A stretch of DNA of 19,277 bases from positions 180,858,356-180,877,632 of the forward strand of contig JANKJI020000004.1 in NCBI GenBank assembly GCA_024626585.2, written 5' to 3'. Numbering within the stretch: the stretch's first letter is position 1; each line of letters begins with the position of its first letter. The position numbers and the translations under genes are program-made. The stretch comes from Ginkgo biloba. Taxonomy: Eukaryota > Plantae > Ginkgophyta. Below the pieces are notes generated by a model. That model ran no database searches, had not been told where the DNA came from, and saw nothing but the letters and a program-made list of their open reading frames with translations. This document shows positions 2,687 through 19,277 of this stretch, piece after piece.

Positions 2687-3042
2687 TGTTGGACTAACCA
2701 CCACACCTTTGGGAATCGATTTCGTAGACTAACCATCACCCTGGAAACTTATGCCTAACTGCGCACTCAAGGTGATGTTGCTGGGTTTGGAAATTTACTA
2801 ACACCTGTAGGTTTTGGTGTAATGGCAAACTCTAACATGGTATCAGAGCTTCGATCCAGGTTCGATTCCCCCGAGTTACATCGAAGGGGGGGTGTTGAAC
2901 TAACCACCACACCTTTGGGAATCGATTTCGTGGACTAATTGCCACCTTGGGAACCTAGGACTAACTACCCACTCAAGGACTAACTGCCAAGTTTGGAAAT
3001 TTATTAACACCTACCGGTTTTGGTGTAGTGCAAACTCTAACA
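2687..3042 (+). mobile_element. Complete TRIM (terminal-repeat retrotransposon in miniature), 356 bp
   Basis: LTR1 2687-2837 and LTR2 2893-3042, both TGTT...AACA. PBS TGGTATCAGAGC at 2838-2849 (tRNA-iMet). PPT GAAGGGGGGG at 2883-2892. 5-bp TSD GGATA at 2682-2686 and 3043-3047. Removing the element and one TSD restores the LINE frame (DIYRAYI-QHTWISPLG). Confidence 0.96.
2815..2869 (+). promoter_or_regulatory. tRNA-type (type 2) Pol III internal promoter candidate: box A 2815-2825, box B 2859-2869
   Basis: TGGTGTAATGG fits TRGYNNARNGG; GGTTCGATTCC fits GGTTCRANNCC; starts are 44 nt apart as in tRNA genes (positions 8 and 52). Confidence 0.6.
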
Positions 3043-3569
3043 GGATATAGGCCCTATAAATGTCCTCTTGAATGCATTTGTTAATTTCCTTTTGACCCAC
3101 TCTGACATTGGGAGCCCTCCAGGAAAACTTGAATGGTGGAAGATTATCAATAGAGATACTAGTAGTCTGTAGGAGAGAGTTCACACTAGTCAACCAACAT
3201 TTTTTTCCCTGTTTAGAGAGCTCCAAAGAGGATAAGTAAGAACAATAAGGATACCTCGAATTACCCTCACGTCTATCTACAAAATCTCGTTATCTGTGCA
3301 AATAACAGACAATCCTGAAAATAGTGTCTAACATGAGAGGCTGAGCATCAAATTCAGCTTGAACAATACACTGAGAAACTGTGTTTTTACATCGAATAAC
3401 TCTGTAAAGAACAAAATTTGTAATTATTTCATAAGAACCCATTTGGTACCAATCAGATAAGACCCCCAAATCTCATAGCCATAAAAACAATTGACCAAAC
3501 AAGAATATAAAAAATATTCAACTTGGTACAAGTATCATTAAAAATGTAGCTGAAAACAAATTTAATTAA

Positions 3570-4551: not shown

Positions 4552-4666
4552 CTTCATAACGTCTGAAGATAGTGTGCTCGGTCCGCGCGATGAGAAGTAG
4601 GCGACCATTGGTGCAGGTACATTTTTTAAAACTGTTTTACTTGGATTCAACTGAACAACCGGAGAT
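4552..4666 (-). CDS. SBT exon 8 (SPVVQLNPSKTVLKNVPAPMVAYFSSRGPSTLSSDVMK)
   Basis: gcag|A acceptor, AAG|gtgatg donor at the conserved K|PD intron position. Confidence 0.92.
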
Positions 4667-7071
4667 CTGCGCAAATTTCAGCATACGAATGAAATTCTGA
4701 CAAAAGAACCTATATGTAGGCACATTGAAAACGTCGTCATATTTCTTCAAACTAATATGCTAACTGCAATATGCAATGTCGACTCTTTATGTTTCCTTCT
4801 GGCAAATAATATTGCTATCCCGGGCAATTCTATGAAAACTTACCTAGATGACAGGTAATACGAAAGGATTTTTGTCCCCTGCTCCAGATCTATAAACACT
4901 ATTGGAATGAATGAAACTTCTGGAATAATTCTCGTGGGTACTTCCGAGAATATCAATCCGGCTCCACCAGCTTGGTATACGGCTACAGCTGCGCTTAAGC
5001 TAGACTCTCCACCAGAGGTGCTGAAGCATAACACAACTTTCCCTCTGACCAATCTCGGTATTAGGGATCCCACAGAGCACCGGCTAATATACATAGATTC
5101 AGTAATCAGTTGTAAGTATGTGATGATATTGAAACTTGAAATCCATTCTCTAGCTACGTTTAATCAATATTAATATTAGATTCAACTTAGAGGAAATGAT
5201 AAACTGTATACAGAGTACATACATACCCAGATCGTGAGACAGAAGATTCATCTACAAGCGGCTTGAAAGAAGTGTTTAGTCCATCGGTATTTAAGGCTTC
5301 TCCCTTAAAAGAAAATAGAAAAAAGTTTTAGGTTACTGCAAATGCAGCCAGAAGTATTCCAACTGTCAAACAAATAAAATAAGAGTTGAAAGCCATGTGC
5401 ATGGTGTGACACCTTGATAGATACGTTGTTGCCTAACACAAGGTTTGTTGGAAAGCTACGATCAATAGTGCTGGCTGCCACGGAGATACCCCAAGGTTCG
5501 GTGTTGGCGACAGAAGCAGGATATGGGCCGTCGTTCCCGGCAGAGAACACGACCGTCACGCCTTTCTCCATTGCGTGGAAGGAACCGATGCCGGAACTGG
5601 ATTTAAAATAGTCTTGTAGAGGTGGCGTTGAACCCAAAGAAATGGAGATTACGTCCACTCCGTCGTTCAAAGCATCGTCAAATGCCGCAAGGATATCTGC
5701 TTCGGTGCAAACACCGGAATCCCAGCATACCTTGTACATTGCTATACGAGCTCCAGGTGCGCCGCCTCTGGCCACTCCATTGGCGAAACCGAAAAAGCTC
5801 GCCGCATTCACAATTGCACCACCTGCTGTAGAGGCTGTATGCGTGCCATGCCCATTGTGATCTCTAGCTGAACGGAATTCCGGCGTTTTCGTTGTGTTGA
5901 GTGGTGATCCGGTGGCTTCTTCATAGCCTTTGACGTACCAGCGTGCTCCAATCAGCTTTTTGTTGCAGTTGGAGGAGTTGAACTTTTCTCCTTTCTGGCA
6001 AACACCCTTCCAACGACTAGGAAGCGGCGGCATCGAGGCATCCCGGAAACTTTGAGACTCTGGCCAAATGCCTGTCCAATATGAGACACATTAGCGGGAG
6101 CAAAACAATATCGATGATCAGCTCAATTCTAATGTCAATAAATATATGCATGGGGGACTCACCTGAATCCAAAATGCCGATGATAACCTCTTCTCCATAT
6201 TTACTGTTGGGCAGCAGAGCTTGTGTTGCATCCAAACTGAGTCCCATGAAGTCCCAACTGTGTGTTGTGTGCAACTTCGCCTCAGTGCTTTTGAAAACGG
6301 ACACGATGCCTTCCATTGCTGTCATAATTCATATTCAAAGGAAATAATCATTGTCAAAAATAATGTCCACAATAAGATGAACTTGCGCCACAATGACGTC
6401 AGGAGCTACAAGAGTGATCTTTGCAAAAATTACATGATAAAGCCGCAACGTGAGTTGCATTAAGCTTCGCCGCGAATCCGGAAAAGCTATGGCGGTAGCT
6501 GTAGATCATCGCTTTCTCCGTAACATCATGTCTGTTTCATCACATTGTGTAGTGAATTTAGACATGTATAGTCATCTGTCTAATATTGTAACGCCATAGG
6601 GAAAACTATGACATTTCATAAAAGAAGCTGATACCTTCCCAGAACTGATTTCAAAATATTATAATGCAGTTCAGTATTGAGATGCGGCTCTTCAAATCGC
6701 TTTCGTCCCATGTATACAATGTAGACCTGTATACATTCATGCAACATAGATCGGACTACATATATATTTGCTTTGACTACTACTGTGTAAATTAAAATTA
6801 CAATAATATGCCTATTTACTTTCTAATATGACTATTACAGAATGTCACGCATATGCGTAAAATTGAAGATCTTTTTCTCCTACCTTTTTCACCTAAATAA
6901 ATAACAAATTAAATACAGTCGCAAACATGATTACACTATGAACATGGAAATGAAAGATATTTAGCATCAACTTATTACATCGTCTGCACCAATAGTTTGC
7001 AGAAACAACAGAAAGGAGAAGAGGACACCCAATGCAGCTGTGCATCCAACGGTGGTGCTGGGCAGTTCCAT
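4552..7071 (-). CDS. SBT3.18: Subtilisin-like serine protease (S8A, SBT3.18-like), exons 1-8; 3' exons with catalytic Ser not present in window
   Basis: Manual splicing: join(7071-6979, 6726-6635, 6531-6434, 6318-6163, 6071-5413, 5303-5227, 5083-4844, 4666-4552) = 1530 nt / 510 aa. All introns are GT-AG, phases are consistent and there are no stops. Motifs: hydrophobic signal peptide, VYIVYMG and YSYRHSFSGFAAKL (I9), LHTTHSWDFMGL maturation site, ILDSG (Asp), HGTHTAST (His), SAGNDGP (oxyanion Asn), GKVVLC (PA), YFSSRGP. CTEADILAAFDDA...GSTPPL...SSGIGSFHAM resembles the SBT3.18 clade (subfamily call from recall, less certain than the family call). Confidence 0.93.
4844..5083 (-). CDS. SBT exon 7 (PA domain, CSVGSL...GKVVLCF...GGAGLIF)
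   Basis: ORF 4840..5094; attag|C acceptor, AG|gtaagt donor. Confidence 0.93.
5227..5303 (-). CDS. SBT exon 6 (GEALNTDGLNTSFKPLVDESSVSRS)
   Basis: ttttaag|GGA acceptor, GG|gtatgt donor; phase-compatible with both neighbours. Confidence 0.88.
5413..6071 (-). CDS. SBT exon 5 (GIWPES...HGTHTAST...AGNDGP...LGNNVSIK)
   Basis: Contains most of ORF 5305..6033; acag|GC acceptor, AAG|gtgtca donor. Confidence 0.96.
6163..6318 (-). CDS. SBT exon 4 (prodomain cleavage site HTTHSWDF, catalytic Asp in ILDS)
   Basis: Part of ORF 6017..6325; acag|CA acceptor, G|gtgagt donor. Confidence 0.95.
6434..6531 (-). CDS. SBT exon 3 (I9 prodomain, AMIYSYRHSFSGFAAKLNATH)
   Basis: acag|A acceptor, T|gtaatt donor; conserved YSY..SFSGFAAKL motif. 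Confidence 0.93.
6635..6726 (-). CDS. SBT exon 2 (I9 prodomain, VYIVYMGRKRFEEPHLNTELHYNILKSVLG)
   Basis: acag|GTC acceptor, AG|gtatca donor; conserved I9 motif; missed by ORF track. Confidence 0.93.
6979..7071 (-). CDS. SBT exon 1 (signal peptide MELPSTTVGCTAALGVLFSFLLFLQTIGADD)
   Basis: ATG at 7071, hydrophobic core, donor GAT|GTAATA, phase 0 into VYIVYMG. Confidence 0.85.
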
Positions 7072-11975: not shown

Positions 11976-13844
11976 AGATGCCATCCCTTATTACTTTTTA
12001 GTTTAGAAATACTAAAATGTGTTCGATACAATCCAACCCATTTCGGTTATAACGAATTAATGTTTGACTTCATCTCATTTATTGCTTTAAAATGTACTTA
12101 TTCTTAGACTCAATTTTTTATCTTAATAGCTTGGTACTGGTAGATGGATCAACCTAAGCTAATGATCTAGTAATCATCTTCATTTTTGGTGTATCATCCT
12201 TCATGAATCCTAACATTTGAGTTGCATTCTATTAGAGTAGGAAAAAACATTTCATTACTTTAACTCTTCCATTCAATTCCATTCTAGTGGTGTTTATTAT
12301 CACTAAGATATGTCTTGATAACTCATAAATGATTACTAGGAATACATTGTGCTCTGCCTAATATTATTGAATGGAAAATACTCACTATCAAATCCTTGAT
12401 CATGCTAGCTCTGTACACAAATCTCTACACTTAAACTCTTTTGTGCAATATTATCTTTAGCATCATGATTCAAAATTACAAGTTCTTCAATGATTACTCT
12501 AATCATATCTAATTTGGCATATTAAATCCAAATGAATGAGATTAGATCATATTATAAGGTACACCCACTCTAATTGAAGTAGTTACGATGGGTTTAGCTA
12601 ATTGAATACCAACCTATTAAGATCCTAACGTGACTTAAGATAATAGTCAATCTCGATTCCATTTTCATCATCAAGTAATTTAGCTAACCATTTGTCATAT
12701 ATCGATACTAGCCTTTCCAATTCCATCCTCTTCAGTTCAATTTTATTCTAATTGTATTGTTATCATAGAATATATATCTTCTTGACTCCATATTTTAATT
12801 GAGTATGAGGTGTGGATGTTAACTACATGAGTTCTCTCTCCTCCTTGATATGTAAACTAGTGGGTGAGAAGACCCACGCTCAGTCGTTAGAGGATTTGTT
12901 GTTGAATTTACAGCGAAAACGATTTAACAAAACCAAGGGGATGATCGTCTATCCACTCTTCAGCCTTCTGGAGCTCAGAAACTCATGGAACTGGTCAGCA
13001 ACTGGAGGAAAAATGCTTCTTGNNNNNNNNNNNNNNNNNNNNNNNNNNNNNNNNNNNNNNNNNNNNNNNNNNNNNNNNNNNNNNNNNNNNNNNNNNNNNN
13101 NNNNNNNNNNNNNNNNNNNNNNATCAATGATGTTGGCTCCTCGCCCAAGTATAATGGAAGATATGGCAGAGGAAGAAGAGATGGCAATATAACAGGTAGG
13201 AGGTATTTCAGAAACCCGGTGAGCAAGTAAGATGCATACAGGGGAAGGCATCATGTTAACAGAGGAAGAAACAATGCAAATGTGAATACTAGAGTTAGAG
13301 TAGAAAATATAGAGAAATCCCCAATAGGAGGTGTAACTAATAATCCACCATCAGACAGGGAGAAAATTTTAATTATGCATCAAAGTTATGATGAAGGATT
13401 GTCGAAATTAAAATATGCATTAGCCACTAGATGGACTCAATCGTATCAAATACCTGTTATGCAGGTGATGGGTTGGGGTGATAGTGATTCACATGAAGGG
13501 TCTCAAAATAAATAATCTTTACTTACTACTTCGGTTTATATTTTGGGGATACAAAGGCTTCAAGTAGATACAATTTTAGCATAGAAGTGAAGTGTAAGAA
13601 AGTAATATTTGGTTCCTACAATTTTAGAGGTGAATTTAAAATAGGGCATAGGGGTAGAATTTTGTTGAGGTAAATTTGAAATAGGTTGTGGGTCTGCATA
13701 GAATTTTTTTGATATGTGTTTATGGATCCTTCAATTTTTAGGTGATTATTTGCTGATATAGTAGAGATAGCACCTTGTTGAGAAGATAACTATTAAGATC
13801 ATCTCAAGTTTAATATTTAATAGAGCAACTCTAATGGTTTGATG

Positions 13845-18779: not shown

Positions 18780-19277
18780 TGTAATTATTTACTGCTAGAA
18801 TAAATTTGTGTATTTATTTTATGTTGGATGAGGCTAGCTCTTCACAAATACATGCTAGTTACCTTGCTCGGTGTGCTCCCATATTTACAATCATAGAAGC
18901 ATTTGCAAGGGATTGAGTGATAAATGCGATCCCATACGAAGGCCTTGATATTAAACAAAAAGAAATATAGACAAAATCCAAGACCACATAGTAGAGGGAA
19001 ATATTCATCAAACTATCCTTCCTTATCACCCAATACTAAATGGATTCATCTCCCTCTTCTATAAACAATACCATTAACTATAGGGATAGAGTTACTAAGG
19101 CCAAAGGGAGCATAGGTATGCACATAGTGCGGTCTTCTTATTGTACCAAGTAAGCTTGGACTATGGAGGACAAATGAAAAGAAGGAGACAACCAGCTCTG
19201 ATACCAAAGTGAAGGCAGTAATGGCAGCAAGCATTCAATGCAGGAGAATAAATGAAGGCATGAGAAAAGATGAGGAC
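18780..19277 (-). mobile_element. LTR 3' end (19210, continues beyond window) + tRNA-iMet PBS (19206-19195) + 5' internal region
   Basis: Minus strand ...CCTTCA CTT TGGTATCAGAGC; extent of internal part approximate. Confidence 0.7.

Follow-up and report, generated by a model that had tools for sequence, protein, structure and literature searches.

TRIMs are widespread in plants, where they often lie in or near genes, and we know of no account of how ordinary TRIMs are transcribed. The classical plant TRIMs of the Katydid type were reportedly described by Witte et al. in 2001. The element analyzed here shares with them its size, its short LTRs with TG..CA ends, a PBS for the initiator tRNA-Met (tRNA-iMet), a polypurine tract (PPT), a 5-bp target-site duplication (TSD), and the lack of coding sequence, but its internal region comprises only 55 bp. 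A survey of plant TRIMs is available (PMC4717578).

Among the systems with which the element can be compared, Cassandra/Ajax likewise couples Pol III expression, which is proposed here, to LTR-type reverse transcription. The LTR of Cassandra/Ajax contains a 5S rRNA promoter (box A, IE, and box C), and the presence of a Pol III terminator in both LTRs poses the same problem as the T4 runs considered below. The present element has no match to 5S rRNA (Rfam, E ≤ 10), and its promoter would be of type 2, not type 1, and would be split at the LTR boundary. The tRNA-derived SINEs (SINE2) likewise have an internal A/B-box promoter that is carried in the transcript, and they have kept the letters of the boxes while the tRNA stems decayed; however, SINEs lack LTRs, a PBS, and a PPT and depend on the machinery of LINEs. 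Extended contacts between primer and template are known from boxes 0, 1, and 2.1 of Ty1, the bipartite PBS of Ty3, and the PAS of HIV-1. In these elements, as in ours, the template can pair near the PBS with the T arm of the primer tRNA; in ours, the stretch concerned is also an exact box B on the sense strand. To our knowledge, such extended contacts have been shown for no plant TRIM.

Helenus is a non-autonomous LTR element with a PBS, a PPT, and a 5-bp TSD, for which tRNA-type A and B boxes have been proposed as a Pol III promoter; both boxes are located inside the LTR, as the first-pass annotation of our locus had stated, so that the whole unit is present in every LTR (PMC10886601). In plants, Helenus has been reported only in Selaginella, and the screen covered LTRs only (PMC10886601), which means that a split unit would have been missed. 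Cassandra and Helenus/Ajax are precedents showing that there are TRIMs with Pol III promoters. The element described below differs from Helenus in that box B follows the PBS, outside the LTR, and in that the LTR gives no tRNA-like match. With box B outside the LTR and no 5S match, it is neither Helenus nor Cassandra/Ajax. Our literature search, outside which Witte et al. 2001 fell, found no TRIM with a split A/B promoter, no post-PBS motif, and no follow-up of 'TRIMp3'.

Structure, insertion, and family of the TRIM

The window, i.e., the whole stretch of Ginkgo biloba DNA that was analyzed (19,277 nucleotides), contains a complete TRIM of 356 bp at positions 2687–3042, in which all the defining features of a TRIM are present, among them LTRs of about 100–250 bp, a total length below 1 kb, and a TSD of 4–6 bp. 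Its features are all given on the + strand. The 5′ LTR (2687–2837; 151 bp) and the 3′ LTR (2893–3042; 150 bp) are direct repeats of each other with TGTT..AACA ends, and thus carry TG..CA termini; they are ~81% identical, corresponding to a divergence of ~19%. Between them lies the internal region (2838–2892; 55 bp), which has no coding capacity. It begins with the PBS TGGTATCAGAGC (2838–2849), complementary to the 3′ end of the initiator tRNA-Met, and ends with the PPT GAAGGGGGGG (2883–2892), which abuts the 3′ LTR. The iMet PBS is named as such in PMC4717578, and a 16-nt form of it, TGGTATCAGAGCCAGG, is given in PMC13308828. The element is bordered by the two copies of the TSD, GGATA, at 2682–2686 on the left and 3043–3047 on the right.

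The upstream, U3-like part of the LTR contains sub-repeats with the motif GACTAACCA(C/T)CAC, which is concentrated in the TRIM; a repeat search identified two units in the 5′ LTR (2692–2739) and four in the 3′ LTR (2898–2990). The two LTRs diverge most in their middle parts (2752–2790 versus 2958–2995).

The insertion could be examined with Logan contigs from two public DNA runs of the same organism, which were placed at 80% likeness. In both runs, there were contigs with an empty site, in which positions 2681, 2682, or 2684 were joined to positions 3043, 3044, or 3046, respectively, with 361 bp skipped. Because 361 bp is the length of the 356-bp TRIM plus one copy of the 5-bp TSD, these contigs provide independent proof of the insertion. 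They represent paralogous empty sites in copies of the surrounding repeat. Together with the LTRs, the PBS, the PPT, and the GGATA duplication, these empty sites confirm the first-pass annotation in its claim of a complete 356-bp TRIM with only 55 bp of internal sequence. The TRIM at 2687–3042 is an old, decayed copy that was inserted into another high-copy repeat. The flanks on both sides (2450–2680 and 3043–3260) consist of a very high-copy repeat, in which the summed contig depth reaches thousands, as against hundreds in the TRIM. An ORF in the flanking repeat (2154–2630, − strand) had no Pfam match and showed a faint RING-like match to NOT4. The assembly is gapped around the TRIM, and the window as a whole contains 11 runs of N (e.g., 2228–2327 and 13023–13122), mostly 100-base gaps, with a total of 882 N.

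The TRIM belongs to a multi-copy family. In each of the two DNA runs, the 3′ part of the LTR was covered by 40–55 distinct contigs and the internal region by about 16–36. Some of the family joints in these contigs went back by 150–200 bp, which fits tandem arrays of the TRIM, and such arrays have been described (PMC4717578). Family variation was assessed at the best-supported 40 of 133 variable sites, as single majority letters and not as an assembled consensus. Compared with the family majority, the copy at 2687–3042 has many differences, mostly transitions; these differences and the LTR divergence of ~19% indicate that this copy is probably dead. Among the family contigs, drift was seen in the 5′ LTR at 2726–2763, and the 3′ LTR had an extra GACTAACTGCCAA unit in place of GTGATGTTGC.GGG.

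A tRNA-gene-like module at the LTR/PBS junction

A tRNA-gene-like module is carried by the terminal 23 nt of the LTR together with the PBS and the 30 nt that follow it. A box-A-like motif, TGGTGTAATGG, is located at 2815–2825, within the final 23 nt of the 5′ LTR, and an exact box B, GGTTCGATTCC, at 2859–2869, where it matches the pattern GGTTCGANTCC and is contained in a T-arm-like stretch, CCAGG TTCGATT CCCCC (2856–2872). The two boxes are spaced by 44 nt from start to start. Both positions and the spacing are as claimed in the first-pass annotation, and box B is exact. The 3′ LTR has a box-A-like motif of its own, TGGTGTAGTGC (3021–3031), with no box B downstream. The only runs of four or more T in the TRIM are the single T4 of the 5′ LTR (2812–2815), which overlaps the first T of the box-A-like motif, and the single T4 of the 3′ LTR (3018–3021). 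This observation also stands as originally made, but the absence of T4 runs between the two, over 202 nt, is not significant (P about 0.25) and is not evidence for a promoter.

Apart from 2859–2869, the 19-kb window has no match to GGTTCGANTCC, even with a tolerance of one mismatch. The motif TGGTGTAATGG fits TRGYNNARNGG, and most of the family copies end in GA at this motif; the reference consensus is TRGCNNAGTGG, at ~30–60 nt upstream of box B. The frequencies expected by chance were estimated from sequence with the dinucleotide make-up of the TRIM. On the + strand, 356 nt would contain 1.6e-4 exact box B matches; for TRGYNNARNGG at a usable distance (35–70 nt) upstream, the expected number is 0.004, and for the family-majority form of box A, ending in GA, it is 0.012. 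Both together, an exact box B and a box-A-like motif in the right place, have a chance of about 1e-6 per element. These estimates indicate that the pair, even though it was noticed after the fact, is no trivial coincidence. Taken by itself, the box A consensus is loose: the window has 5 matches versus 3.6 expected.

In the vicinity of the boxes, the family majority differs from the present copy at five positions: 2809 A>G, 2825 G>A, 2850 T>C, 2852 C>T, and 2855 T>C. Of these, position 2825 corresponds to G19 in box A, and A is found there in 85–89% of the family contig depth. Among the best-supported 40 of the 133 variable sites, no majority difference was found within box B or in the T4 at 2812–2815, and none of these 40 sites lies in 2856–2897, which is no proof that this segment is invariant. 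The lack of a majority difference in box B among these 40 sites counts in favor of an inherited tRNA-gene-like module.

The partial tRNA-like pairing that had been noted in the first-pass annotation is not above chance. With default settings, ARAGORN called no tRNA in the TRIM, and no Rfam model matched it at E ≤ 10, the tRNA and 5S models included. The minimum free energy folds of 2803–2882, 2806–2880, 2790–2892, and 2838–2892 were no more stable than those of shuffled sequences (z = −0.6 to +0.8). When the threshold of ARAGORN was lowered to 80%, the segment 2806–2882 was called, with 12 calls in the whole window at the same setting; for comparison, plant DNA (245 kb) has a background of 0.43 calls per kb, and 3% of shuffles are called. 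Because the relaxed calls are near background, they were set aside as a sign of tRNA identity. Of the five pairs in the T stem, two are left in the TRIM at 2687–3042. We take the letters of box A and the T stem to resemble those of a tRNA-iMet gene, with transitions, and entertain descent from that gene as an idea only.

A metagenome scan with the LTR end and the PBS returned 27 plant contigs, of which only one, L020, carries a relative of the TRIM at 2687–3042; the other contigs carry different, unrelated iMet-primed elements. Pattern scans of genome and viral contigs based on the PBS gave only chance matches, in bacteria and phages. The relative on L020 (4553 to about 4830), presumably a TRIM of the Katydid type, has the same LTR end, CTCTAACA. 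Its PBS is followed by CTTGATGACCAAGCGGTCACGAGTTCGAATCTCAC, which gives the layout PBS, CTTGA.., and GAGTTCGAATCTC. The family-majority letters at 2850, 2852, and 2855 turn the letters that follow the PBS in our TRIM into CTTGAC.., matching L020, and L020 and the family-majority TRIM have in common the PBS with CTTGA and then the core GTTCGA(A/T)TC. Between PBS/CTTGA and the T-loop core, L020 has an additional 12-nt hairpin, and it is the absence of this hairpin from the TRIM at 2687–3042 that results in the tRNA-like spacing of 44 nt. The box-A-like block of the TRIM aligns with TGGGTTGAGTTGG in L020. No alignment is left at the LTR starts or downstream of box B. Still shared are the LTR end, the PBS, CTTGA, the box B core, and the box-A-like block (TTGG.T..A.T.GG), which suggests that these blocks are under constraint.

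Further resemblances extend to the tRNA-like layout. The T-stem pair at positions 52–62 is G-C in the TRIM at 2687–3042 and A-T in L020; i.e., both sides have changed and the pair has been kept. Positions 4600–4682 of L020 align end to end with the tRNA-Sec (long-variable-arm) model, with a score of 14.1 bits (E = 1.5) that is far below the gathering score. Under relaxed ARAGORN, the two elements had a common layout that places the anticodon loop where LTR and PBS meet. In L020, TATAAAT occurs ~30 nt upstream of the tRNA-like start. There is moderate evidence, based on one related copy only, that a tRNA-gene-like module straddling the LTR/PBS boundary has been inherited in this TRIM lineage.

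The proposed split promoter and rival readings

We propose, tentatively and at less than an even chance, that the junction where the 5′ LTR meets the PBS is a functional split Pol III promoter. The module would be an internal promoter of type 2 (the tRNA/SINE type) that is split by the LTR/PBS boundary. Since box B is outside the LTR, the promoter, if real, would be complete only at the 5′ LTR/PBS junction, where the internal region adjoins the LTR, and the solo and 3′ LTRs would be without box B. Box B and box A would be bound by TFIIIC, and transcription by Pol III would begin ~12–18 nt upstream of box A, near 2797–2803. As both boxes would lie downstream of the start, the RNA would include them, and each new copy would regain them, as in SINEs. 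Reverse transcription, with tRNA-iMet as the primer and with the PPT, and integration, with the 5-bp TSD, would be supplied by an autonomous element, probably of the copia type. The decay of the stems and the retention of the box letters in the TRIM follow the pattern of SINEs, an analogy that would make the promoter, and not the tRNA fold, the object of selection.

The claim of a split promoter in the first-pass annotation gains from the geometry of the boxes, the improbability of the box pair, and the layout in L020, whereas the T4 before box A, the A at 2825, and a rival explanation that fits the box-B letters weaken it. The T4 at 2812–2815, which is flanked by G, is located between the predicted start and box A. 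As this is within the first 10–15 nt of the proposed RNA, Pol III would need to ignore the signal at the 5′ LTR and to stop at the same signal in the 3′ LTR. A G-flanked T4 is an efficient Pol III stop in animals, and plants may tolerate T4 in Pol III transcription. The predominance of A at 2825 in the family copies, the lack of a match to a tRNA model, and folding at the level of shuffled sequences also count against the promoter. The upstream half of the LTR contains two to four GACTAACYRCCAC sub-repeats, of a kind that is common in Pol II LTR enhancers, and TATAAAT upstream of a start is as fitting for Pol II as for plant Pol III genes; in view of the GACTAACYRCCAC motifs and the TATAAAT of L020, an ordinary Pol II promoter is also possible. 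Public RNA runs decide neither way, as one run had 0 reads on the TRIM and a poly(A) run had 2 reads, both in the flank.

The box-B letters can also be understood as a signal for reverse transcription. In this explanation, which we consider the closest rival of the promoter but less probable than it, the TRIM would be transcribed by Pol II, from the LTR, or by read-through from the host, and the RNA of the box-B-like stretch, as a cis-acting signal, would base-pair, outside the 12-nt PBS, with the T arm of the primer tRNA-iMet; the near-palindromic T loop would account for the likeness to box B, and chance or a signal in U5 for the box-A-like motif. The pairing itself is strong: between CCAGGTTCGATTC and the T arm of tRNA-iMet, RNAduplex predicts 13 bp, interrupted only by one bulged A (one of A58–A60), at −18.4 kcal/mol, compared with −7.7 ± 2.4 kcal/mol for shuffles, of which 1 in 2000 was as good, and with −13.1 to about −5 kcal/mol for twelve unrelated iMet-primed elements. 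The T loop AUCGAAA is textbook knowledge for eukaryotic initiator tRNAs, and it is a weakness of the calculation that the 5′ strand of the T arm and the loop in the query were taken from such knowledge. The 3′ strand of the T arm, on the other hand, is fixed by the 16-nt PBS (PMC13308828). The CCA at 2856–2858 lengthens the pairing although box B does not require it, sequence retained in an internal region of 55 bp is likely to be needed for reverse transcription, and the enhancer-like sub-repeats in the LTR also accord with primer docking. However, L020 keeps the T-loop core, yet its pairing with the T arm is at chance level (−8.4 kcal/mol). The departures of our TRIM from the perfect complement GGTTTCGATCC are, moreover, exactly those that make an exact box B, and a box-A-like motif at the tRNA spacing, expected only 0.004–0.012 times by chance, is left unexplained. 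The letters of box B fit both a Pol III promoter and a docking site for the primer tRNA, and the two readings may coexist.

It is also conceivable, but unlikely, that the module was captured from a tRNA or a tRNA-derived SINE early in the TRIM lineage and is now functionless, having been kept by descent and recent amplification. Such a relic is compatible with the decayed stems and with the layout that the two relatives share in their weak tRNA-model and relaxed ARAGORN alignments; drift would be expected to leave a T4 within the unit and, in most copies, an A at 2825. The box B core, however, is nearly perfect in both elements despite the far divergence between L020 and the family, which is hard to account for without constraint, and an internal region of 55 bp leaves little room for a passenger. 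Coincidence is very unlikely. In that case, both motifs would have arisen by chance in an ordinary TRIM transcribed by Pol II or read-through and would have been picked post hoc among many elements. They were indeed noticed post hoc, box A is loose (5 matches in the window versus 3.6 expected), and neither the cloverleaf nor the T-run argument is significant; nevertheless, the joint probability of the box pair is about 1e-6 per element, and the box B core occurs at the same place in the independent relative L020.

The broader form of the split-promoter reading is somewhat more doubtful in our judgment: SINE-like expression would then be a property of a lineage of classical plant TRIMs, in which box A belongs to U5 and box B follows the PBS; only full elements would be transcribed, at their 5′ ends, and the T-arm-like letters might double as a dock for the primer tRNA. 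If true, this would be a third, structurally distinct coupling of Pol III to LTR retrotransposition, after Cassandra/Ajax and Helenus, and would help to explain the small size of such TRIMs. A real split promoter would offer a testable answer to the question of how TRIMs are transcribed, bring seed plants into the 'TRIMp3' class, with a form that is invisible to LTR-only screens, explain silent solo LTRs, and mean that many potential TFIIIC/Pol III sites have been added to plant genomes. If primer docking is right, the TRIM would provide a plant example of the tRNA–template contacts known from yeast Ty elements and retroviruses. In either reading, the 30 nt past the PBS are a defined experimental target.

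Other short LTR elements and a neighboring gene

A second PBS for the initiator tRNA-Met, TGGTATCAGAGC, was found near the end of the window (19195–19206, − strand), and it probably belongs to another LTR element, the LTR of which extends beyond the window. A still smaller type of TRIM was seen on contigs L004, L005, L007, L018, L022, and L023 (e.g., L005, 13349–13400). Here, no more than 18 nt (TAGATCAATCTAGTGGGG) separate the PBS from the next LTR start, TGTTTGAG, giving an internal region of ~30 bp. Another type, found on L016 (8762–8870, − strand) and on L001, L010, L011, L021, and L026, consists of TRIMs in which the ~80-bp LTR is a near-perfect hairpin, TGTTAGAAGTGGGCTTTAAGCCTAACTC...GAGTTAGGCTTAAAGCCCACCTCTAACA, with a GGTTTTG loop; on L016, two such elements are arranged head to head. 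The only models matched by the LTR of the L016 type were hairpin models resembling miRNA precursors, and these miRNA-like matches are attributable to the palindromic nature of the LTR itself.

Within the window, an ORF on the − strand (5305–6033) encodes the catalytic part of a plant subtilase (Peptidase_S8, 1.4e-21), with matches to cucumisin/SBT3-like structures down to 7e-61. This subtilase gene is located ~2.3 kb from the TRIM.
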